DNA from: Octopus sinensis
Lineage: Eukaryota
Direction: 5' to 3'
Assembly (NCBI RefSeq): GCF_006345805.1
Contig: NW_021832227.1
Location: 248,001 to 312,000 of the forward strand
Length of the DNA stretch: 64,000 nt
Shown: one piece after another, positions 1-53,360 of the stretch
How the letters are laid out: every line of letters begins with the position of its first letter
How positions within the stretch are numbered: the stretch's first letter is position 1
The notes under the pieces: model-generated
What the model was told of the DNA's origin: nothing
Database searches by the model: none
The model's input: the letters and a program-made list of their open reading frames with translations, nothing else
Program-made: the position numbers and the translations under genes

Positions 1-2866
1 CAGGTGGAATGTGAGCGGATAGTCAAGTGGAGGGGTGAATTGAACATTCCTCGACTGTCGGGGGACTATTTGTATTGCCTGGTAAACCAGTGTCTTGTTG
101 ACTGTTCGGTAAAGTGTATTTGATAACATAAATAGGAGTCAATATTGGTATATTCTGATTTGTGGAAGAGTAATATTGGTCGTGTGTGTGAAGTAGTGCT
201 GTCTATGGGAAGTTGGGGGAGAACACGTGTGGAGTGGGTGACCCAGTTTGTCCGGACTGTCAAGTCATTGTGGAATTATTTGGGAAAGTTACACGTATAT
301 TGAGGACTCTATTGAAGGAGTGCCACAACTCCCGGATTCGTCAAATTCTTACCACTGTCGATTCACTACACAGAACCAAACAGGCCCGAACTGAACAAAT
401 CGAGCAACTAAATAGGCAAAGAAATGTCATTGCCCAGAAGTGTGAGCAAGTAAAGTCTCGGCCAGCTGAAAAAAAGAACAAACCCCCAAAAATTAAACTT
501 ACCAACCAGCAACTCAACATGGTCAAATTACCCGATATTCAACTTGCCTCAGTCATTTGGTTGTACTCATTGTAGGCCACTCGTTTGTGCCAACTGGCAG
601 TTCAAATGTACAAGAACCTGAGTATTTATGACTTTGAAGAAATGAGGAGCTACTTCCGCCCTCCTCCGACAGTTGTTTCCATAGCCTCTTGCATTTGTCG
701 CATGTTCAAACAAAGGCCATGTTGGGAGGACGCGAAAAGACTGTTTTTGTCTAATCGATTTTTCGAAAAGATGGAATTCTACGACAAAGATGCAGTCGAC
801 ACTTCTCTCCTCACCCACCTCCGTAAATTCACTGAGAACCCACGTTTTGCTCCCGAAGCAGTGGGGAATGTAAGCAGAGCAGCAGTGTCCTTGTCCATGT
901 GGATTCATGGGGTGTATAGCTACGCCAGTTTTAAACACTCTTCGACTCCCAAAGACGTCTACAATTTCCACCCACAGTTTAGAGATCAACTATACAAGGA
1001 GGAATCACTCCAAGACGAGTTGGTGGACATACAACAACAACTCACCAAAATTTGCGAGCAGATTAAAGTAAGCCTCACTACTTTCTCCAGGAACAAGAAC
1101 TTAAACTGACACGACTTGCCAACTTGCTGACCAATCTTGATCTTTTTACTATTCAATGGAAGGCACAACTCGACAATAACAATTTTATTGGTGAGGACAT
1201 TTAACTGACTTGAGGCCACGTGCTGTACTGTGCGGCTATGTTCAGATGTTGTGGGGAGATGACAGAATCAGACCGACAGGTTTTCGAGAAAAAAATATTT
1301 GACATTCTCAACCAAATTTTTGAGTGGAATCTTGAAATGGATGAAACCCTCAAATACAACAACAGCCACTTGGACGCCTTGTTGAGTGGACATGTGCACA
1401 AGGAATATTGGCGACTGGACGAAATACTTTTCGACCGAGAGCAGCAATATCACATTCAATACAAGTTCAGGTCTCCACATGCAATACAAAATTATGCACT
1501 CTTCACTCTCGCCCACATCCTCAACGATCAAAGCGAGTGGGCCTTGTTTGTGGACCCCCAAAATAAGATCTCCGACTACATCGACGAGTCGGTCGTCTCT
1601 TTGAGAGATAGGAAAGATAGAGTTAGGGAGGCGATAAAGAATGGTAGTTTTATCCAACCACGTTCAAGGGAGCCGCCTTGTCGTTACTGACATTGATGGA
1701 GAATGCCCACATCTCATCACTAAAGACTTTGAATCCTCCCCTTATCCCACTGTCTTCATCGAGACAGACCCAATTGTCGTCCACCCTGACTTTAGTTTGG
1801 TCGTCACGTCCTTTGACCACCATGTGTCCACATCCTTGTCTCCTATTATCGACCTCCGGGACAGTCCCACTGAGCGTCTGGCAGCGTTGGATAGAGAACT
1901 GACGAAAAAAGTGGGCTTGGATGGTCAGGAAGAGACAATTGCACGCCGTCTGTTAGAACTTGGATTGGAGTCTCTACAAATATTTGTATTGGACTAGTCT
2001 TATGCGTAGAAAGAGGCCGAGTCGATCGTGGCAAACTTTAATGAGGACGAGGACTGTATGATTGAGCAACTCCTCGGACGTGCTCGACTGATTCAGGACG
2101 AGTATTCAATAGTGAGGTCCCGGAGGAAATACCTCGATGAGAAAAAGGAGCATTTAAATGAACTGACCTTCAGTCTAGCTGGAATATGGACTGACTGTCC
2201 TGATTTGTCTGTTCAAACATTGCTGAGAAATGTCATTGATGAGACCACACTTACAGACCTGAGGGACATTCTGATGTATTCCCCACTCCCTCCTTCCCTT
2301 CTCCCTCAACACACCACAACCTGGCCCCAGACAGTCCACAAGCTCATTACGCTTTATGGCACGAGCGGAATCATCACTCTTCAAGGTTTTACTGTCCCTT
2401 CTCATTTAGAACACATTCATAGTACTTTCGACGTCATAGCTCACATTCCTCTCCGATCTATGCCATGTGCTACTCCGGGGATGGAGATGGGCAGAAAATG
2501 GTTGAAATGGCCCAAAAAGCAAGCAGTGAGCCGTCCTTCTTGATTGTGTTCACGTCGGCCCAACACTGCACTCGAATCACTCGTTTAGCAAATGTTGCAT
2601 TTTTCTTTATTCCAAGGAATTTCGAGAAATACCAGTCATGTTTGTTCTCATTTTAGAATCCACTTTCCCTCTTCACTGTGATGTTCCCACTGTTCTGAAA
2701 GAACTCCCAATTGTATGCTTTAATAATATTCTAGAATGTCTCCCTCAGTCGTGTCCCTCCCACTAAATTATTCGGGGACCAATTAAAGGACCTTTGTTTA
2801 GCTATCAATTTCCTCCGTTCATTACCTGATAACGTAGAGGAAATGGAGGAGGATTTGTTTTACTAA
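1..2866 (+). CDS. Divergent dynein heavy chain-like protein (stalk/microtubule-binding domain and downstream region), 5' end outside the window, multi-exon
   Basis: EEMRSYFRPPPTVVSIASCICRMF..WEDAKRLF..FFEKMEFYDKD..PRFAPEAVGNVSRAAVSLSMWIHGVYSY matches the dynein stalk MTBD pattern. The ORF pieces join through 23-24 nt GT-AG introns (e.g. gtcatttggttgtactcattgtag, gtaagcctcactactttctccag, gtattggactagtcttatgcgtag). Stop TAA at 2864-2866. Exons near the 5' end and around 2520-2700 are not fully resolved. Confidence 0.65.
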
Positions 2867-3129: not shown

Positions 3130-5280
3130 TTATTGACCAACGGACCAGGGTAAGCCAGTTAATTATAATCCCCCGTTAAGACCGGAAGGAAAGTAAGAGA
3201 TCCCCATTTCTCTACGGGACACCATATGAAGTATAGCCATCCAAGGTAAATATCATTCTATGTTTTAATTTTGACTCGTTTACTACTAAGATATCCGGCC
3301 AATGGAAAATCACGAGCCGGATTAGCTCGGAACGCCGTCTCCATATTGATCTGGCGTTCATGAGGATGACCACAAGAGAGCCTTTCACACGGGTTGGTGG
3401 CAGGCCTCCCGTAGGAGCGCCACCATCTCCCGTAAATATCGCTCTTTTTCGTTAGAGATCACATTTTTCGATCCCAATTTAACAATTTCCGCCTCAATTG
3501 ATTTAAGTGACTTGTCTATCGCAAAGTTAAGTTCCTTTTAAGGGGGACTTTTATTTTAGGTCGTCTGCCCCTCGTTAGTTTTTTCTCCGGAATTAATTTT
3601 GAGACTTCTGGTGCTTCCAGATCTATGGTCTCAGTCTGAGTATGACAAAAAGTGACAAAAAAAATGATTCAAAATTAACCCATTCCTAATTAATATCTGG
3701 TATGCTCTCCTTTTGCCGTAAAAATTTCTCAGCATCGTTTTTTAACTGATAGAATGAGTTTTTCAATAAAATATTTTGGAATATTTTCCCAAATATGGAG
3801 AAGTTCCTGCTTTAGTTCTTTGACATTTTTTACATCGACTTTGCGTAATTCAGCCTTCATATGAGCCCATATATGCTCAATTGGGTTCAGATCATGTTTT
3901 CTTTTTCGAAATAATCCATAATTAACTTAGCAGTATGACAAGGTGCATTGTCCTGCTGAAAAATGAAATCGCAAAGTCCCATTTTTGCAACAGATCTCTG
4001 TAGCTTGTTGGCTAAAAGGTGAAATATTTCGCCGAATTTAATGTCCCGTCAACAAAAACTAATTCTCCAACCCCGTTAAAAGAAAAAACATCTCCATACC
4101 ATGAGTTTCCCTATTTTTTGTTCTGTAAAATTCAGACCAAATCAACCTGTTCCAAATTTTACAGTTGTTGAAATATTTTTAGACTTAAATTGTTCACCGC
4201 TTTTCCTATAAACTATTTTTCTTGTTTTGTTTGGAATCACGTGAAAAACGCATTCATCCGAAAAAATTGTACTTTTCCATTCGTTAATAAGATATGGTTA
4301 AAAATTTTTTCGTTATTTTCAATCCTTTTTCAGTGTTTTTTTGCATAGGTTCACCCGTTTGGGTTCCAATAGATACATTGCTTTTAAGGACTTCTGTTGA
4401 GAGACGATTCTTCCAAAAGGAGTTACATTTTGCTGTTTCTTCCAAGCGGAAGTCACACTTTGGGCTTTCTTAGAAACCGTGTACTATCCGGAATCAGAGG
4501 GCGGATTCGATTCCGTATTTTTGTTATTCTTCGCTGAGAGACAGCCTCCGTATTTATCCCAGTGTTCTGAGGATTCACAATTGATGCAAAGTTTTGTGCT
4601 TTTTTCGGATTTGGGCATTCTTTCCCATCATGAGGACCGCCACAAGTTAAGCATCTTACTTCTGCGTTGCAAAAACGTGCTATATGCCCGTAGGATTGGT
4701 ATTTGTAATAACAAGTCGGAACCATTTGCAGTCAACTTTTCTGAAGCCAATGTTTAGTCCCATTCGGATTAATGAGTTTGTCTCACCTCTCAAAGGGATA
4801 GTCATCTTTACTATTGGTAAGTTTTTTCCAGCCTTCATGAAACGTTCCACTTTAAATCGCGGTTAGAGTATCGTCGAGAGATCCTTCTTCAGTTCTTCAT
4901 TACTTGCCCAGTATGGGATATTCTTTAAGAAGATCTCCGATGGACGTAACTTGTCGTATTTGATGGCAATCCGAGCCAAAAGATTTCAGCTGATCAATCT
5001 CCATTTAAAAGTTATTAGCCTCCGCATGAGATCTAACTCGAGTATAAATGAGCCATTCATTTTGCGTAAAATTCTTGCCTTTAGAGCAGTTGGAATTGAG
5101 CATAGTATGTTGTATTTCTGAATTTCACCAAGTATTTGACTGCTTACAGTCACATGAAGTGATAAAGTTCCACGTGGAGTATCAGTATTATTATTTTCAA
5201 TTTCAATATTAGGCTTACTTTGCATCACAGCAACCATTCTTAAAGGCAAGGGGGGATCATATTATGCCACGAGCCTAATA
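3130..5280 (-). mobile_element. Degraded APE-type LINE 5' part: gag-like ORF1 with CCHC knuckles plus the start of the ORF2 endonuclease
   Basis: ORF1 shows CYYKYQSYGHIARFC..CLTCGGPHDGKEC knuckles. The ORF2 start MNARSIW..PDILVVNESKL..LDGY followed by a GDYN remnant matches an APE endonuclease. Interrupted by a Tc1 fragment. Confidence 0.7.
3690..4380 (-). mobile_element. Tc1-like DD34E transposase fragment nested in the LINE ORF1
   Basis: Minus-strand LMVW, FIFQQDNAPCHTAK and DLNPIEHIWAHMK motifs, with frameshifts. No TIRs recognised. Confidence 0.75.
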
Positions 5281-5593: not shown

Positions 5594-7804
5594 TCAGAAT
5601 CCTCCAAGTTCTGCGTATGCTAAATCAATATTGGCGCTTATTTCTTTGTATATTCTTTTCTCGGACATGAGTTCTTCTATAAATATATTAGAGTGAAATA
5701 AAGATAATGTTGTTAAATGATCCAGGGAATGGTTAGACACCAATAATAATGGATATTAGTTAAATGGAATTTATGTCATTCATCGTCGATTGTATCAATT
5801 CTTCTAATTCCGCAGTTTTTTTAATCGCATTTTCCAGCTTACCTGAGCAAATATTGAGAAAAACAGACCTTCCGTAATTTCTAGATCTGATTCCAGTCTT
5901 TTGTTGCAATATAAATATTCTTCATTGGATTTGGTCGCCTATGTGAGTGTGTTAGCGGGGAATGTCAGTTAATAGGTAGCACAGCAACCTTCTAGTCTAT
6001 CGATGTCTTGCTGACGCTTATTGGACACCCTATCGAACTCTGCTGCCCTTGTCTCGCTCTTAAATTCCATTAAACTCGACAAATTATGCCGCATAGCAAA
6101 GCTGCACATTACCTCATACAAATCTTCTCTCAGTTTCTTGATTGTAGCCTCGTATTCTTCTTCCTTGTTATATGCCTACAATAAATATGTCAGTTTAATT
6201 AATTAAAGTTAGCAACACGGGCCTAGTGGAGATAAGAAAGGAAGGATTGTTAGCTCGGTACCTCAAGAGAGCTAATCTCAAGTGATTTGAGATTGTTTCC
6301 AACAACTTTTAGCTCATCTTCTAACTGGACAACCTTACTACAAAAAATATAAATAAAACTGCTCTTAATACACCGGGAACCGCAGCGACAGATTAAGACT
6401 AACCTCATTTGAGTGAGCTTCCAATGTTTTTATTCTGTATTGGACGTTCGAATGTTCGTTTGTAGCTATCGTCAGTTGTCTAAATCAGTTCCAATGAACT
6501 GACTTTTTATATTCATTTGCCTGTTCTTCAAATTTATCACAAGATAATTCCAAGTTTTTGTTTGTTCTTAAAACCTAATCGCCAGTATTAGCCGTATGCG
6601 CCACCACTGCTACACTTTGCCCACGCAGCGGTTCCCGGACTAAAATACCTCTCAGCCAATTCAAGACGAGCCATTGTCCTCTCCAAGTCTATTTCAGTGA
6701 CCATCAACTTCCTGCTGGTCTATTTATCAATTACGTGTTATTTTTACCTCGTCGTATTTATGGTCGCTGTCGTCTGCTGTCCATTTTATATCGGCCAATT
6801 GTTTTTCCAGTAGGTAAATTCGCTCTTCGTCGTTGTTGGACTTGGTTTCGAGGACTTTGCGGATTCTAAAACGCATTTATTGCGGGCAAAGTGTTAGCAG
6901 TGGTGGTTGAAAGGAAAATTTAGCTAACACTGTCTAATTCGTCCTTCATTGCTCCCTGTTCATTTTTAATTCTGTTCAATTCTTTTTCAAGTCATCATTA
7001 GCATCTTCCAAGGCCTCATTTTTATGTTCCAGCACTTTCCGTTGGCTTTAATTGTTAGTGGTAGTTAATAGGTCAGGTAAATACCGGTCACTTTCGTCGA
7101 ATTTTTCAATGTAATGATTAAGTTGCTGCGTCTTTTCTTTCAAGTTGGAATCTGTGGCTTCGTTATTATCGTCCTGCAGCTTCAAATGTCGGTTTAGAGA
7201 TTGTAGCTCGTTTTCTTTCTATAATTAATTATTTATGGCATATTATTGGAATAATTAAACACATAATTATTATATACACTCTCTAGTTCAGTTTGCAAGG
7301 ATTGATAATCCTTTTGGATTTTTATAAATTTATCCTCAAATTCATCTCTTTCATTTCTTAAAGTCTCGATTTTTGTTTTTAGGTTAGCTATTGGATTGTT
7401 TTGCATTCCACAAAAATTGCAATTTGTTAATATAATTTATTATATTTACAATCTATGTTATCCTCTCAGAAAATAATACTTAAAATTAAATTACTTAATA
7501 AATAATAATTAATTCAAAAAATGACCTCGCTTAATTCTTTTAATGCATCATTAAGCTGAGCTGAAACTTGATTATACTTCTCGTCAAGATTTTCGTTGTC
7601 AATATTGACAGCTTTCTCTCTTTTAAGAATATCTGAGATTTCATCTTCTTTCTAAAAAAACACACAAAGACTTACTTCTTTCAACGTATTTTTTAAATTT
7701 GTGACTTGTGATTCAAGTTCATCAGCTTTTTCTATGCAGTTCTCTTTTTCCATTTTAAGTTCCAAAATTTTTTTCTTCAATGCTCCAAGTGTTGCTTCTG
7801 CCAT
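5594..7804 (-). CDS. TPM: Tropomyosin with alternative first exons and five pairs of alternative exons
   Basis: Exons in transcript order: 1a 7804-7676, 2 7651-7526, 1b 7406-7278, 3 7218-7085, 4x 7045-6929, 4y 6865-6748, 5y 6719-6649, 5x 6574-6504, 6x 6479-6404, 6y 6337-6262, 7 6175-6113, 8y 6058-5989, 8x 5938-5869, 9x 5842-5760, 9y 5676-5594. All junctions are GT-AG. Exon lengths 126/134/118/71/76/63/70/83 nt equal the canonical tropomyosin sizes as recalled. Peptides GALKKKI, RKVLE, SRKLMVTEIDLER, EDELKVVGNNLKSLEIS, ETRA. Confidence 0.95.
6373..6387 (-). promoter_or_regulatory. Intronic RNA pairing site B2 (between exons 6x and 6y)
   Basis: Sense CGCUGCGGUUCCCGG pairs with B1 at 14 of 15 positions. 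Confidence 0.7.
6601..6638 (-). promoter_or_regulatory. Central intronic docking region holding adjacent sites B1 (6624-6638) and A2 (6601-6622), between exons 5y and 5x
   Basis: Sense CCGGGAACCGCUGCG-U-GGGCAAAGUGUAGCAGUGGUGG. B1 complements 6373-6387 and A2 complements 6884-6906. It is a GC-rich island in an otherwise AT-rich intron set. Confidence 0.75.
6884..6906 (-). promoter_or_regulatory. Intronic RNA pairing site A1 (between exons 4x and 4y)
   Basis: Sense CCACCACUGCUAACACUUUGCCC is the reverse complement of site A2 (6601-6622): 22 bp with one bulged A. The complementarity is direct; the function is inferred. Confidence 0.75.
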
Positions 7805-9679: not shown

Positions 9680-10137
9680 CTATTCTATCGCCTGTTGATA
9701 AACGATGTTTGTCGTCCGTCCTTCCTTGGCATATATGAATAAATTTTCTCTTCTGCCTACCCTCGAGCATCCCACATACAGCTGTCCATGTGAAAAGCAC
9801 TCACTCTCTAAAAATAACCCAACTACCTTTAATGACTGTCCCTGGGCCTTGTTTATTGTCATTGCAAAACTCATCCTCAAAGGAAATTGCAGCCTTTTAA
9901 ATCTAAATGGTAATTCATCAGAAATTATCGGAATTCGTGGAATATAAACATCCTCACCTTTATACTTACCTGTTAATATCGTGGCCTCTATTACGTTAGC
10001 CATCAAATTTTTGATAACTAACCTCGTTCCGTTGCATAATTTAGGTGGCGCAAGATTTCGTAATAAAACCACTGGAACGCCTATCTTTAACTTTAAAAGA
10101 TGATTCGGGATTCCAGAGGGATCTAGGGAGTTTAAAA
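9680..10137 (-). pseudogene. Helitron PIF1-type helicase C-terminal fragment
   Basis: [59 protein letters not shown]. The rest of the Rep-helicase is absent. Confidence 0.9.
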
Positions 10138-11129
10138 ATTCAATCCGGTTGAATTTTTAGAAAATAAAAAAAAATAAAAAAAACAAATAAAAATAAATAA
10201 TGTAAAAACAAAAAAATTAAAAAAACAAAAAAAAAACTTTAAAAATTTGTAAAATAGTATAAACAAAAAAAATCTCTGCCGCCACGACAACAACCTGTCT
10301 AATTTTTTTAACAGCCAATTAAGATAATGCTTAAGAGCCTTTATAGTCCGGAGATTTAGCTTAGTGACCTTGATTAGACAAACCACTGGCGGAAATGGGG
10401 CAGGCGGAGATGCGGCAGGCAGAGTAGCGGCAGGCAGAGTAGCAGCAGCCAAAAAAGCGACACACAAAAAAGATTTAATTAATTACCTTAAGCTGACCGT
10501 TTTTTCTTCAGCTTCGTTTTTCCTCCTTCGGTTATCTATTTAAAAAATTATTTTTGAATAATAAAAAATATTAGGAAAAAAGAGGCATACAGAAAATAAA
10601 TTCTATCTTTACAAAAAACTTCTTTTCTTAAGGTCGTCTTCCCTCCTTCGGTTATCTATTGAAAAAATTATTTTTGAATAATAAAAAAGTTTAGGAAAAG
10701 AGGCATACCGAAAATAAATTCTATCTTTACAAAAAATTTAACTAAATAGTTAATATTTTTACGCAAATTCTTCTGATTGCGCTGTCAATTGGTGGTAAAT
10801 TGTGTTAATGATTGTGCTAATGTGGTTTCAACTATCAAAGTGTTTTTCAAAATCTGTTAATTGCACACTCTATTCAAGGTCGTGCAATCTGTAATTGCAC
10901 ATTCTGTCAAAGTCAAATATGATACAGTACCGGTCATATGTTTTAGACATTCTGAAAAAATAATAGCTTTAATTTTGATTCATGGTCGATAATGATATAT
11001 GCATTTAATTTTAAAGAGAAAATCGTAGGAGGAATTGAATTTCTTTATCGCGAATAATTGGGAGTTCATCATTGTTAATATTCTTGCTGTCGTTTTTATC
11101 AAGGATATTCTTAATACGTGAGATTTTTG

Positions 11130-26789: not shown

Positions 26790-27360
26790 TTTTCCAATTC
26801 TTAAAGGTTACGAACGGCATTCCTGCCTTTTCAGTTCCGCACACACGCTCGCCTCTCAGCCGCAAACTAAGACTTACCGCCTTACCTGCAACCCAGACAT
26901 TATCTTCTCTAAGACCTCAGGGAGGCCTTTGAGGGACAATTCCTGGGTGTCCGAGAGCTCCTCTCGCCATTTTAAGCCATGGGCTAGCTGGATATCTCGT
27001 CTTCTGACTTTCTTGAGCGCGTCAACGTACTTCTTCCGGTCCTCGCAGAAGTGCCAGGCATGTACGCCATAGGTCAACACGGGTAACACCATGGCGTTAA
27101 ACACGCGTAGCCAAGCACCTCTCCGCAGCCGGAAGGCACGCAGCGCGCCTAATCGCTGAATTGCACGCATTTTCGTACATGCAATGTGATCATCAAACTT
27201 ACCGGACAGCTTAAAGAGCACGCCAAAATAAGTCATCCGATCAACTGCAGCAATTGCTGACCCGTTCAGCAATAACCTAGGGACGTAATTAGTGTAACCC
27301 CTCGTCCTTTTACAGACTTTGAGAACACTGCACTTGTCCGGACGCATCTTTAGACCCCTA
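26790..27360 (-). mobile_element. LINE reverse transcriptase C-terminal fragment
   Basis: PDKCSVL..MTYFGVLF..FDDHI..VFNAMVLPVLTYGVHAW. Confidence 0.7.
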
Positions 27361-33589: not shown

Positions 33590-35330
33590 AAGTGATCAAA
33601 GGATGACACTTCAAGCACCTCCTTCCCAATACGTTAATCTGCGGGTTGTCCAGGCTGCTAAAGAGAGTGTTTGAAGGACTTTTAAGTTGATCTTTTTTAT
33701 TAGCGATTCCCTCTGAAGTTTGATCAACTCCTTCACATTAACTTGGGTAGCACCCAGACCATACTTAGCCGACACGTAGCCTTTTATGGTTCTAAGGTGT
33801 GTACCAAGCGCTTTTTTAACAGCAAGATTGGAAATCTCCCTTTGGAATACACATAACCCACTCCAGAAGGTGTCGTGCATCTTAGTAAGAATTAGCTCAC
33901 TCAAGTGTAAGATGTTACTCAGTCCACGTCTTAGCTGCACGTGAGACAAGTATAATCTCTCCTTATTGTTTGCCAACACTTGGACGTGATTCTGTCGGAG
34001 TACTCTTCTGACAATAAGGTCCATTTTATCGTACTCACTCAGCTTAAATTCGATCAGGCCAACAAAGTAGTTTAGAAGTGAGATCGCGTACTCGTTCAAG
34101 TTGGAGGATCTCTGAAGACTTAGCGAACAGTTTAATGTCGTTTATGAATATGAGATGGTTGGTGCTAAAACATCCTCCTTCATGTTCAATCGACATTTGT
34201 TCGAATTGGGCAGTGAGGATTCTACTCAGCGGTTCTAGGCAGAGAAAAAACAACAACGGAGACATGTTCTCGCCCTGTAATATGCCCCTTTCTTGCTTAA
34301 TCTCGCCTATATCGCATTTTTGTTGTGTAAATGCACAACCCACCTGTCTATCACAGTTACAATTTGGCCTTTGCAGACATTCAACGAGGTAGGCATTGTT
34401 AACCGAGTCATATGCCTTCTTACATCCACCCAAATCGACACTAGTGAGTTTCCGTGGACACTCGCGAGGCATTTGTTAACGAGTGCCTGCTTCTTAGCTT
34501 CCTGGAAATCTTTCCACAGAACTAACTGGTTCTCGGACAGAATCCCATTCATTTCCACAAAATTTCTGACTTCAGTAGCCACCATCTTAGTCATCAACTT
34601 GTACAGGTTGGGCATACAGGTAATCGAACGATAATCTGTAGGAACGCAAAGGTTATCTACTTTAGGAATCAAATAATTGATCCCAGTACATAACCACTCT
34701 GAAATCGAGCCAGTATTAGGTATAAACTGTTCGATTGCTTGACAAATGCAATCGTGGATTGGTTTGCAATTTTTTATAAAGAAATTATACATTTTATTGA
34801 CCCCAGGTGTCTTCCAGTCAAAAAGACGGGTTACTGCCTCATCAAACTTGTTGTGGATGTCAGAGACACCACAAGACTCGATCATCAAGGAGCATTGGAT
34901 CCACAAAACGGAAACGACACACTCTTGCGAGGACGTGTTTTTCACATACTCCCCCATTTGTCAAGCATTTCGGTCTTTTGCTGAATATCGTCTTTCTGTG
35001 CAACCGCCGATAGAACAGCCTGCGATTAAACTCAAACAGGTTGTTCTCTCACCTGCGCTGACACCGAGAGTCATGCGTAATAAACGACAATCAGCTCCTC
35101 CCTCTCTGCCCGGGCACACCTCAACTCGTTGAAGTCCTATTTGACAGCTCGTTCTCAACAAAGTACAGTAAGCCCCAAAGGAAGAGTCATGCCCTTGACC
35201 GCATTGCTCACATTGTGAATGTGCTCAGTCACCGCTTCCAGCTCGGTCTTTTTTGCGGCTACCTTCTCGGAAATGTTTAACTTCCACATACTCTTTGGCC
35301 TAGGTTTCTGGGTGATTTCTTCATAGGTTG
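33590..35330 (-). mobile_element. R4/NeSL-like non-LTR retrotransposon RT region, degraded
   Basis: DYRSITCMPNLYKLMTK, GILSENQL, KKAYDSV, GILQGENMSPLLFFLCLEPL, NHLIFINDIKLF (degenerate YxDD), RLYLS..RRGL. Confidence 0.85.
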
Positions 35331-36965: not shown

Positions 36966-38400
36966 CTTTTTTTTTTTTTTTTTTTTTTGACAGAACTCGA
37001 ATCATTAATTAATAAATTCTCCCAGCGAGACGGAGGAACAGCTGTTGCCACGCATGACAGCCAGCAGGATCCTCTGAATGAGGAAGTAAATTCCCTAGGG
37101 TCCTTGGACCGCGAAGAACAAAGATTCCCAATTTCTTTAGGGAAGTGAGGGTCCCGGAGCCAAAGACGCCGGAAGTCTCGACAACGATTGGCCAAAACCA
37201 AAAGTCATCCATCAAAGACTGATATTCCGGCACTTCGTCGAAGCTCAGCCTTATTAGCACGAGACCCAGCAAGAGAGGCCGATTCGTTGATGAAAGACTT
37301 TGAGAAGGTATCCACACAAGTGGAATCCCAGACCAAAGGTCTCCCAGAATAAAACGAGAACAACGTAGAGCCGTCCGGCCTTTTCCCGTCACCACGGTCG
37401 AGACCCTTAGGCTCAAGGACAGAAGGGTAGCCGGCCTTTTCGAGTGAGTCGAGAATGATTCTGTTAATCGCCGAATGGCGTGGAATACGAACCCGCGCTT
37501 TTCTTGCAGGAGAGGGCATGGAGCCCGTATACGTCCATAGTAGATCCGCACCGGCAGGGGTGGGGACTACAGATCGGAAGTCCGAGGCGGAGGCAAATGC
37601 CAAAACGGAGGGCGTCGGAGTCAAGACAGGTGTCCAATGGGTCGAAGGAAGGCAGTTAAGCCAAGAGCCAGAATGCGGTTGGCGGCTGGCACGGTAACAA
37701 GCCAGTCTGTGCTGGTTCAGGAGAGCCTCCAACGAGTCCGCATGATGCTTACTAAGAATTTTATCCCATTCACGTTGGAGGGACCTATCAGAAGGGAACT
37801 CAAGCCCTTTTTCCTTCCAAAGCAAAAGTGCAGAATTAATATCAGGGTCCAAACGAGATCCGGGCGATTTTTCAAGAATCTTATGGACAAGAAGATACAA
37901 TCCTGAAGACGATGAAAGGAAAGCGGGAAGAGAAATGTCGAGAGCCGAGCGGAGCCCAAGCCCACCAAAAGGAACAGGAAGTTTGGCCTGACGCCAACCG
38001 ACATCATCGAACTTGACGTTAAAAATAATCTCGGCTGAAGAACGCACCAGAGCGTCAAAAGACTCCAAAGCAGAGGGAACAGAAAAGCAACAGGAACTCC
38101 TTAGGACATAATTGATCCTCGGAATCAAAAGAAAGTTTTTGAGGATAAAAAAAGCGGGATGGGGATCGATGTCCACAAGTTTATCACAAAGAGAAGCAAG
38201 AGCATTTCTCTTGGAATCGAGAATACGAGAGACCGATTGGTGGTGGATCGGGGCACCCAGGATTTCAAGTTCAGAATAAGAGGTCTGCCTCAGATCGGGC
38301 AAGAGGCCACGAAACTGGGCAAGATCCCATTTTATAAAAGATTTAAAAATATCCAAATATACACATGGATTCAAAAACCAAAATGACTTGGAGAAACAAA
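36966..38400 (-). mobile_element. CRE-like non-LTR element, 5'-truncated, with poly(A) tail
   Basis: 389-aa ORF: LEILGAPI, LLIPRINYVLRSS, QAKLPVPFGGLGLRSA, HSGSWLNCLP, RHSAINRII, LEPKGLDRGDGKRPDG, LVWDSTCVD. T-run (poly A on minus) at 36966-36989; frameshifts. Confidence 0.92.
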
Positions 38401-47369: not shown

Positions 47370-48220
47370 ATTAGCAGCAGAGGCTAAAATGGAATGGCAA
47401 TTCCCATACAAGATGGCTATTGATATGCGTTGGAAAAATTTTTTAGTTCTGGGACCGAGGACTCCCGACGTTTCCACTGCGATCGGGGCAAAGATATAAG
47501 GGTACGATAATGCACTGTATTTTTTGACTTTTAGCGTTTCTGCCAGGTTAGGTGTGGAGACCGACTCTTCGGCTTACGTAAAGATGTTTCCGGTGGAGAA
47601 GGTGTCCGCACAAGTTGCGTTTCAGATGAAAGACTTGCCATTTTCAAAAGGGAAAGTTGTTAGACCATCAGGATGTTTACCATCCTCTCGAACCAGGTCG
47701 TCCGGTTTCAATTGTGATAAGAATCCGGCAATTTCGAGAGTCCGCTTGACTATGTCATTCAGGACAGTATGTCGAGGGAGGCTTCCGGAGCTTCTCTGGC
47801 ACGATAATGGGTGCAATCCAAAGGGGTCATCGGTCGGTCCGCAGCGGAACCGGTGTTCCCGACATACGTTCAGCCCTAGACGCAATGAGACGCCGATCCT
47901 CAAGCAATTATTGTCCAATAAGGTTCCAATCGATCTCATTGGGATGGCGGTCAACCAAGTCCTCCGAATATAGTTGCAAGGCAGCCAATAAACAAGCCAA
48001 GTGATATTGATTAAGCTTAGGATATAGGTTGTTCGACTTCTGGTCACAGAGGATCCTGTCCCATTCGTCCTGTGCGTGTGTATTCTGCGGAAGCTCAAAA
48101 GACAACCCAAGCCAGCAACTTTCTACGGCGACTGACTCCGAGTCCATAGAAGATTCGGTAACGGGTTGGAGAATTTCTTGGACAAAGGTGCTCGTAGCAT
48201 GTGTAAAAGAAAGGAATGCT
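47370..48220 (-). mobile_element. CRE-like 3' fragment
   Basis: [50 protein letters not shown]. Confidence 0.85.
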
Positions 48221-52273: not shown

Positions 52274-53360
52274 ACCAGAGGCCCTCTCGGATCCTTAAGT
52301 CTTCTCCCGATGGACTGCCCGACCTCGTTGAGGAACGAGTTAGTCTCCTTTCCCGCGGCTCCAGGGAGATTGGCATAATACGGTAACGGTCCGCGAGGGA
52401 AGAATACTTTTGTAGTTTCATCCTTTCGGCGTGGTTTGCAGCCGAACAAGAGTTCGCAGCGGAAGAATCGATCCTCGACTTTGAGAAGGTATCAACAACG
52501 GTAACATCCCATACGAGGGCTTTCCCGGACGATTACGGAAATATTGTCATCCCATCAAGCCTTTTCCCGTCTCCCCAATCGAGTCCGACCGATTCGAGAA
52601 GGCACGAATGGCCCGCGGATTCAAGACCGGCCTTCACGATTTGATTGAGGGTCTTGTGTCTGTATTCCATGCCTGCGCTCCTCTTGCAGGAGAGTAGGTG
52701 CAGTCTCTTTTCGTCAACGGCCTTACCGCATCTGCAGCGGTGTTTTGCGCAAACGTCCAGGCCGAGTCGGTGTGCGACTCCAATGCGCATGACAGTATCG
52801 TCTAGCCACGTCCCGATACTGAAGAGAGGAAGAGCATTCAGCCAGCTGCCAGAGTGAGGGGCGGATGCCGCACGAAGGCATGCCAGGCGGTGTTGGTCAA
52901 GGGTTACCGATAGCTCAGACACACGCGCTCGGCATGCGATAGTGTCCAAGGCACGTTGGGAGGAGAAATCTCCAGGCCTCTCAGAAAAGAAGCGATCCCA
53001 GGTAGCAAGCCCATCCGACAAAGCACCGTCCAGGCAAGATTCGAAAGGTTTGAGTAGGATCTCTGAGGCCAGGTTGTTGCACATCGAAAGGGAGGATAGA
53101 TATGCCAGGAGTGCCAAAGCATCGAGGTGGACGTAGGGGACGGATTCAGCAGCTTTTTTCAGAATGGCGTCGTATGCAAGGAGTAGATCCATTTGCAAGA
53201 AACAGGGATTGCTTCTGAGAATGAAGATAAGTTTCGGCAGATGGATGTTGTTTCTCAGGAGGAAAAAGGCAGTGTGTAAGTCCAGGATAGATAGGTTGGT
53301 TGAAACTCTTTGAAAGTATTCGGTTTTGGCAGCTGAGGCGGGTCGCAGAGGATTGGACAA
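52274..53360 (-). mobile_element. CRE-like fragment lacking both ends
   Basis: LPKLIFILRSNP, HSGSWLNALP, MRIGVAHRLGL..CRCG..HLLSC, GDGKRLDGMTIFP; in-frame stop. Confidence 0.85.

Follow-up and report, generated by a model that had tools for sequence, protein, structure and literature searches.

Structure of the tropomyosin gene

The window analyzed here is a stretch of 64,000 nucleotides (nt) deposited under Octopus sinensis (NCBI RefSeq assembly GCF_006345805.1, contig NW_021832227.1, positions 248,001 to 312,000 of the forward strand). Its minus strand carries a tropomyosin gene with tandem alternative exons. The 5' splice site (donor) of one of these exons, 4x, is exactly complementary to a 9-nt element in the intron that follows, here called the anti-donor. 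The anti-donor lies inside an intronic box, A1, that can also pair with a distant box, A2. A first-pass annotation of the window described this arrangement as a splicing switch. We tentatively suggest that the anti-donor is a branch site for which the 4x donor, box A2 and the U2 small nuclear RNA would compete.

Reading frames and splice signals, together with exon sizes, served to reconstruct the gene. Exon boundaries, including the one between exon 4x and its intron (6929|6928), follow the canonical tropomyosin exon sizes and phases, not transcripts. In window coordinates, the exons are:

7804-7676, minus strand: exon 1a
7651-7526, minus strand: exon 2
7406-7278, minus strand: exon 1b, ATG-initiated (MQNNPIANLKTKIETLRNERDEF...), between exons 2 and 3 and in phase with exon 3
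7218-7085, minus strand: exon 3
7045-6929, minus strand: exon 4x, 117 nt as assembled against 118 nt expected
6865-6748, minus strand: exon 4y, 118 nt
6719-6649, minus strand: exon 5y, 71 nt, parted from 4y by a 28-nt intron
6574-6504, minus strand: exon 5x, 71 nt, to which 4x would be spliced on the x path
6479-6404, minus strand: exon 6x, 76 nt
6337-6262, minus strand: exon 6y, 76 nt
6175-6113, minus strand: exon 7
downstream of exon 7: the pairs 8y/8x (70 and 70 nt) and 9x/9y (83 and 83 nt)

The segment 7406-7278 resembles exon 1b, from which short tropomyosin isoforms start at an internal promoter. The sizes (134/118/71/76/63/70 nt) and phases of the internal exons are those of canonical tropomyosin, with the 117-nt exon 4x as the sole exception. 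The alternative exons are homologous and stand in tandem (4x/4y, 117/118 nt; 5y/5x, 71/71 nt; 6x/6y, 76/76 nt); their use is presumably mutually exclusive, since double inclusion would shift the frame. Both assembled isoforms have 289 amino acids. In a comparison with the Pfam family PF00261 (gathering cut-off 38.6 bits), the y isoform scores 181 bits and the x isoform, with its frame restored, 75 bits. The closest database proteins to the y isoform are spiralian tropomyosins with 40-47% identity. The gene is thus a tropomyosin, and its exons are probably used as two coordinated cassettes, 4x-5x-6x and 4y-5y-6y.

The introns within cassettes are extremely short: 24 nt (1a-2), 28 nt (4y-5y), 24 nt (5x-6x) and 26 nt (8x-9x). 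The introns between alternative exons have 51-74 nt and contain GC-rich boxes. The GT-AG introns of 23-28 nt in the window are:

7652-7675, minus strand
6720-6747, minus strand
6480-6503, minus strand
5843-5868, minus strand
1068-1090, plus strand

The intron between exons 1a and 2 (7652-7675) is without an internal A usable as a branch point. In animals, introns of less than 30 nt are reported only from myxobolid myxozoans and Dicyema japonicum, where splice-site motifs are reduced (PMC13644364). Together with the spiralian best matches, the ultra-short introns suggest a dicyemid origin of the sequence.

The exon 4x donor and its anti-donor

The elements around the exon 4x donor are:

6931-6923, minus strand: exon 4x donor 9-mer AGU|GUUAGC (AGTGTTAGC), positions -3 to +6, boundary 6929|6928
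6922-6899, minus strand: 24-nt hairpin loop, unpaired in both the minimum free energy (MFE) structure and the centroid of the local fold
6906-6882, minus strand: box A1, in the intron between exons 4x and 4y
6898-6890, minus strand: anti-donor GCUAACACU (GCTAACACT as read on the minus strand), the core of A1 and a candidate 4y branch site

The first-pass annotation had reported an exact 9-nt complementarity at a distance of 24 nt, and this is what the sequence contains: 6931-6923 and 6898-6890 are perfect reverse complements. It also described the donor register (-3 to +6) correctly, given the exon model with its boundary at 6929|6928, and was right to place the anti-donor (6898-6890) inside A1 (6906-6882). 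The hairpin stem covers all nine donor positions with Watson-Crick pairs only and has a predicted energy of -10.5 kcal/mol in isolation. In an 80-nt local window this hairpin is both the MFE structure and the centroid (z = -2.5; 0 of 200 shuffles equally stable). It is missing from the MFE structure of a 111-nt fold. The eight nucleotides at the 3' side of the loop (6906-6899) are the 5' part of A1 and could possibly serve as a toehold for A2.

When the 100 nt downstream of each of the 13 donors are compared, complements exceed 6 nt only for 4x. A 9-nt complement for any of the 13 donors appeared in 0.22% of 5000 dinucleotide shuffles, and an analytic estimate gives 0.36%. The match is real and unlikely by chance on this naive null, which overstates the surprise: five of the nine pairs (GUUAG:CUAAC) follow from the donor and branch-site consensus sequences.

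The 4x donor is also the poorest match to the U1 small nuclear RNA among the 13 donors, with 4 of 9 Watson-Crick pairs. Its non-consensus bases (G at -2, U at -1, U at +3 and C at +6) are all required by the pairing with the anti-donor. The complementarity of donor and branch-site consensus leaves these four bases unexplained.

The anti-donor as a candidate branch site of exon 4y

For comparisons with U2 we used the conserved U2 branch-binding sequence AAGUGUAGUA. The window contains no U2 gene, and all U2 comparisons refer to this general consensus and not to the organism's own sequence. The anti-donor with its flanks (UGCUAACACUU) pairs with it over 10 bp with a bulged A (-8.9 kcal/mol), which is the best pairing among seven candidate branch sites of the gene. 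The anti-donor has a yUnAy core with complementarity to GUAGUA of U2 and the A bulged. The candidate branch A (6894/6895) is 29 nt upstream of exon 4y (6865), within the expected range of about 10-40 nt. Judging by these features, the anti-donor is best read as the probable branch site of 4y.

Near-identical motifs occur elsewhere in the gene: GCUAAUACU at 6592-6584, 14 nt upstream of exon 5x, and GCUAACACA at 5956-5948, 14 nt upstream of exon 8x. A fourth GCUAAYACU-like motif is at 6254-6246. For each of the four motifs, 8-9 of 9 positions fit the 4x donor. In the 64-kb window, GCTAAYACT is found in exact form at three sites only, all of them in this gene. A window-wide enrichment of GCTAAYACT was considered and rejected (21 matches against 18.7 expected); the signal is confined to the gene.

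Box A2 contains AAGUGUAG, the same 8-mer as the branch-binding region of U2, because it is complementary to A1. Like U2, it leaves the branch A bulged.

If the anti-donor is the branch site of 4y, the hairpin closes off the 4x donor and, with it, the 4y acceptor. This is where the sequence parts from the first-pass annotation, according to which the hairpin hides the 4x donor so that exon 3 is spliced to 4y: the best candidate for the 4y branch site would be masked together with the donor, so that the proposed consequence does not follow.

Long-range pairings

The other pairing elements of the alternative region are:

6624-6601, minus strand: box A2, in the intron between exons 5y and 5x, about 270 nt downstream of A1
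6638-6624, minus strand: box B1, which begins 11 nt after the 5y donor and abuts A2 with a 1-nt overlap
6387-6373, minus strand: box B2, in the intron between exons 6x and 6y
6593-6583, minus strand: GGCUAAUACUG, another complement to the 4x donor (11 bp, two of them G-U); a candidate 5x branch site

The helix A1:A2 consists of 12 + 12 bp around the bulged A 6894, with a pairing probability of about 1.0 and a duplex energy of -47.3 kcal/mol. B1 and B2 are complementary at 93% over 15 nt, and their helix continues into the region of the 5y donor and a UAUUAAG motif before exon 6y. The order of the boxes is A1, B1, A2, B2, so that the two helices cross. According to this model, A1:A2 would loop out exons 4y and 5y, and B1:B2 would loop out 5x and 6x. 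A1 is found once in the window; with its 24-bp pairing to A2, this marks the box as non-random independently of the donor match. An origin of the boxes from a repeat or transposon was rejected, since neither A1 nor the B boxes are found outside this gene.

The 4x donor has a stronger predicted partner than A1. Its duplex with GGCUAAUACUG has an energy of -16.4 kcal/mol against -13.5 kcal/mol with the A1 core, and the candidate branch A of this site is 14 nt upstream of exon 5x. A2 is followed on its 3' side, at 7 nt, by this site, and A1 is preceded on its 5' side, at 15 nt, by the donor. Because both flank A1:A2 so closely, their pairing extends this helix outward. The MFE structure and the centroid of the 362-nt intron between 4x and 5x contain A1:A2 plus the 11-bp extension (z = -5.8). 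A 1-kb fold from exon 3 to exon 7 also holds A1:A2 together with the pairing of the donor and the 5x motif. In a matrix of duplex energies of donors with acceptor regions, the donors of 4x, 5x and 6x are each strongest with their own partner on the x path.

Several other pairings are predicted in the gene. The 74-nt intron between 5y and 5x (6575-6648, minus strand) holds B1 and A2 back to back, plus the branch motif of 5x. Its strongest predicted duplexes are with the introns 4x-4y, 6x-6y, 8y-8x, 7-8y and 6y-7, and it looks like a pairing hub in these predictions. Further downstream, a 16-nt pair with 94% complementarity connects 6061-6076, immediately upstream of the 8y acceptor, with 5758-5773 at the end of the 9x coding region (both minus strand). 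Its effect might be to hide the 8y acceptor when the x path is taken. The entire 24-nt intron between 5x and 6x (6482-6505, minus strand) forms a 10-bp hairpin (AAGUCAGUUC/GAACUGAUUU; -11.3 kcal/mol, z = -4.6, 0 of 200 shuffles as stable), with the 5x donor paired to a branch-like CUGAU motif. The idea that ultra-short introns are generally donor-branch hairpins was rejected: among four checked by eye, only 5x-6x is an obvious case.

Folding of growing transcripts

The switch was modelled by folding growing transcripts that start just upstream of exon 4x. The probability of the hairpin and the mean unpaired probability of the donor change with transcript length as follows:

transcript with only 4x and its intron: hairpin 0.03-0.10, donor unpaired 0.68-0.74
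transcript during 4y and 5y: hairpin 0.4-0.8, donor unpaired 0.15-0.46
transcript ending just before A2: hairpin 0.97, donor unpaired 0.03
transcript including A2: hairpin 0.00, donor unpaired about 0.5

With A2 present, A1:A2 has a probability of 1.0, and the donor pairs with the 5x motif with a probability of 0.06-0.45. In the 80-nt fold, the parts of A1 outside the 9-mer are single-stranded on both sides and usable as toeholds. Displacement of the hairpin by A2 is therefore well supported energetically within these predictions. The global optimum (-234.5 kcal/mol) contains A1:A2 and the pairing of the donor with the 5x motif. The best structure constrained to B1:B2 (-222.4 kcal/mol) includes the local hairpin without its being forced.

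These values agree in part with the switch proposed by the first-pass annotation. A hairpin that could hide the 4x donor is predicted in the 80-nt MFE structure and just before A2 (0.97), but the early values of 0.03-0.10 do not amount to a robust default. Release of the donor by pairing of A1 with A2 is borne out as far as the loss of the hairpin (0.97 to 0.00) and the rise in the unpaired probability of the donor (0.03 to about 0.5) are concerned, but the donor is predicted to pair again, over 11 bp, with the 5x motif. Strand displacement itself is favored by the predicted energies, in which A2 outcompetes the donor (24 bp and -47 kcal/mol against 9 bp and -10.5 kcal/mol), but the consequence for the y path does not follow. 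Nor is the switch needed to explain skipping of 4x, for which the weakest U1 donor of the gene (4 of 9 pairs) could suffice alone.

A possible mechanism and its alternatives

The sequences, complementarities, statistics and predicted energetics given above can be combined into a model in which exon usage, the identity of the branch site, kinetics and the effect on splicing are our inferences. The core of A1 would be subject to a three-way competition among U2 (10 bp plus a bulged A), the 4x donor (9 bp across a 24-nt loop) and A2 (24 bp plus a bulged A), followed by a hand-over of the donor to the 5x motif. In an early transcript, the hairpin of donor and A1 would mask the "forbidden" intron between 4x and 4y at both of its reactive ends, the donor of 4x at one and the branch site of 4y at the other. 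Such masking would oppose the frame-shifting double inclusion of 4x and 4y and delay commitment to the 4y acceptor. Once transcribed, A2 would capture A1 by strand displacement from the unpaired flanks of A1; the 4y branch site would stay masked, and 4y and 5y would be looped out. The released 4x donor would then stand at the foot of the helix, facing the near-identical motif before 5x (11 bp), and the x path would result. If instead U2 or the crossing helix B1:B2 wins, exon 3 would join 4y, and 4x would be skipped mainly through having the poorest U1 match in the gene. As the donor and the 4y branch site are masked together, the direct consequence of the hairpin would be silencing of the 4x-4y intron and postponement of 4y. 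We prefer this model and regard it as plausible, although we would not call it probable.

Steric hindrance was rejected as the basis of the exclusivity of 4x and 4y. The gene uses introns of 24-28 nt, so steric exclusion cannot enforce exclusivity, and another mechanism is required.

Several points weigh against the model. Pairing of a donor with a branch site should hinder the binding of both U1 and U2, not aid it. The hairpin is rarely formed in early transcripts (0.03-0.10), and its probability varies widely with context. A1:A2 prevails in every case at equilibrium, so the y path would require kinetics or additional factors. In exon 4x an A5 run (6987-6983) seems to be one base short, which produces an in-frame TGA at 6978-6976, three codons past the run. 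Donors with GUUAG are inherently complementary to CUAAC branch sites, so that much of the match could be a by-product, and the GCUAAYACU-like motif recurs four times in introns of the gene. Comparison with relatives gives no help: a protein search with the y isoform found no relatives above 47% identity, two metagenome scans (one with protein, one with A2 DNA) found no related locus, and exact-product look-ups of two open reading frames of the window gave no match. A dicyemid origin would account for both the missing relatives and the odd donors.

The by-product explanation is the alternative we take most seriously, while still considering it rather unlikely. It holds that A1 was built around the 4y branch site, that the 4x donor merely happens to be of the GUUAG type, that the 9-nt match as such is functionless, and that A1:A2 against B1:B2, together with the strength of the splice sites, decides the outcome. 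CUAAC and GUUAG are complementary over 5 nt by nature, two of the four GCUAAYACU-like motifs stand 14 nt upstream of x-exon acceptors, and the 4x donor fits all four almost equally well. The donors of 5x and 6x show a similar donor/branch complementarity, the hairpin has low early occupancy, and the reduced splice-site motifs of animals with ultra-short introns (PMC13644364) make an odd donor less remarkable. What this explanation does not cover are the four remaining matched positions, all of them non-consensus for a donor, the rarity of a 9-of-9 match in shuffles, and the confinement of exact GCTAAYACT in the window to three sites of one gene. The switch as originally described (a default hairpin that hides the 4x donor and sends exon 3 to 4y, until A1:A2 frees the donor for 5x) appears improbable to us. 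The hairpin is indeed the local MFE structure and is present in the best structure with B1:B2, i.e., the y state, and A2 does abolish it and raise the accessibility of the donor. Yet the same nine nucleotides are the only good candidate for the 4y branch site, so that splicing of exon 3 to 4y would be impeded too; the displaced donor is predicted to pair again with the 5x motif; the donor is already very weak for U1; and the early probability of the hairpin is small.

Decay of exon 4x would make the donor pairing a leftover, or leave it with the sole role of keeping a poison exon silent. The exon has 117 instead of 118 nt with the TGA soon after the A5 run, and its donor is the weakest in the gene. 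Inspection of the sequence found no alternative acceptor or donor that restores the 4x frame. However, the loss of a single homopolymer base is an error typical of assemblies, and with one A restored the x isoform reaches the score given above for the Pfam tropomyosin family. The other alternative exons are all intact, with 5x, 6x, 8x and 9x at canonical length, and A1:A2 is perfect save for one bulge. The frameshift may thus be an assembly error, or a recent real lesion with a dead x path; that 4x is a decaying pseudo-exon seems to us very unlikely.

A broader version of the competition model is doubtful but worth stating. In an animal with a spliceosome adapted to introns of 23-28 nt, the long skipping introns would be handled by RNA alone: at the base of a long-range helix, the donors of 4x, 6x and, in part, 5y would each pair with the branch element of the distant acceptor that is their proper partner. 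The A1 core would be contested by U2, the donor and the U2-mimicking A2 (AAGUGUAG) in a co-transcriptional toehold switch, and by way of the crossing helices the three exon clusters would be joined into two cassettes, each used entirely or not at all.

Should the hairpin and its displacement prove real, competition between a donor and U2 for one branch site would add a new element to structure-controlled splicing. Should the match be only a by-product of the complementarity of splice signals, it is a caution for motif-based claims of "anti-donors". The coordination of several mutually exclusive exon clusters in one gene is largely unsolved beyond arrays of the Dscam type. The present locus is a compact system of about 700 nt, readable from the sequence, in which two crossing helices and donor/branch pairings would choose between three-exon cassettes.

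Comparison with known systems

Exon 7B of hnRNP A1, with its downstream intronic element, is a known case of donor masking. Other donor-masking hairpins are those of MAPT exon 10 and SMN2 exon 7 (TSL2) (PMC11802352). The hairpin described here resembles them in being a short local stem over the U1 register of a weak alternative-exon donor, with its 3' arm in the downstream intron; its 9-bp stem is also comparable to theirs in length and stability. It differs in that the 3' arm is predicted to be branch-site-like, lies inside A1 and can be captured by a distal partner.

Competition of docking sites and selectors is described for Dscam1 exon 6, 14-3-3 xi, Mhc and srp (PMC4691838, PMC3535345, PMC8791459). 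Tandem homologous exons, GC-rich boxes that pair over hundreds of nucleotides, and the looping out of skipped exons are common to these systems and our locus. Here, in contrast, there are two box pairs with crossing helices and not one docking site for many selectors, and what would compete for A1 is not another selector but a splice donor and, probably, U2. Under the strict definition of a docking site (one site with two or more selectors) the locus falls outside this class: A2 pairs strongly with A1 only, and B1 with B2 only. Exclusivity would here stem from the crossing helices and from the competition of donor and U2 for A1.

In human ATE1, exons 7a and 7b are controlled by competing structures R1/R4 versus R3, plus a long-range helix (PMC7797038). 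In both cases alternative pairings of one intronic element choose, or here would choose, between exclusive exons, with competition between local and long-range helices. The elements of ATE1 are distinct from the splice signals, and they are conserved and mutationally validated, whereas the pairings described here are predicted.

The tandem-duplication origin of competing structures (PMC6071210) is also relevant. Toward its 3' end, the intron before 4x carries CACUAAC, and this part of it can be aligned with the A1 region (12 of 500 shuffles align as well). Such a likeness is expected if exon 4 was duplicated along with its upstream branch site. Unlike in that model, there is one strong selector, and the copy before 4x pairs weakly with A2 (8 bp with one G-U pair, by manual alignment).

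Vertebrate tropomyosins provide two examples of exclusive exons. In rat alpha-TM the branch point between exons 2 and 3 is too near the upstream donor, and exon 6B of chicken beta-TM is subject to a repressive secondary structure. Our gene belongs to the same family with the same exon sizes, and it likewise has a candidate downstream branch site near the upstream donor (34 nt). The difference is that its 24-nt introns preclude steric exclusion, and the proposed block is the pairing of donor and branch site. In this comparison the locus would join a donor-masking hairpin with long-range competition, and would add a donor complementary to branch elements and two crossing helices.

Other features of the window

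The plus strand has no open reading frame of note that overlaps the donor and anti-donor. Nothing in the window matched Rfam at the gathering threshold, and no tRNA genes were found. A very divergent fragment of a dynein heavy chain lies at 585-2543 on the plus strand. It matches the Pfam MT stalk domain; AAA_9 stays below the threshold (17.4 bits against a cut-off of 27.4), and a search of the protein database gave no word-level homologues. Downstream of this fragment, the sequence TACTAACACTT (2861-2871) matches the complement of the U2 branch-binding sequence perfectly over 11 nt, with an A bulged.

The window holds few genes, and transposon debris is abundant:

9690-10110, minus strand
about 3740-4330, minus strand
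26874-27347
33611-34957
37205-38374
47622-48110
52533-53360

The debris includes a fragment of a Pif1-type helicase, a remnant of a mariner-like transposase (recognized by eye) and long open reading frames without a Pfam match, some of them interrelated. At about 10520-10760 on the minus strand, a unit of about 120 nt (gtaaagatagaatttattttc...aatagataaccgaaggagg) was read in two tandem copies, beside a short GC-rich repeat (ctgcctgccgc...).

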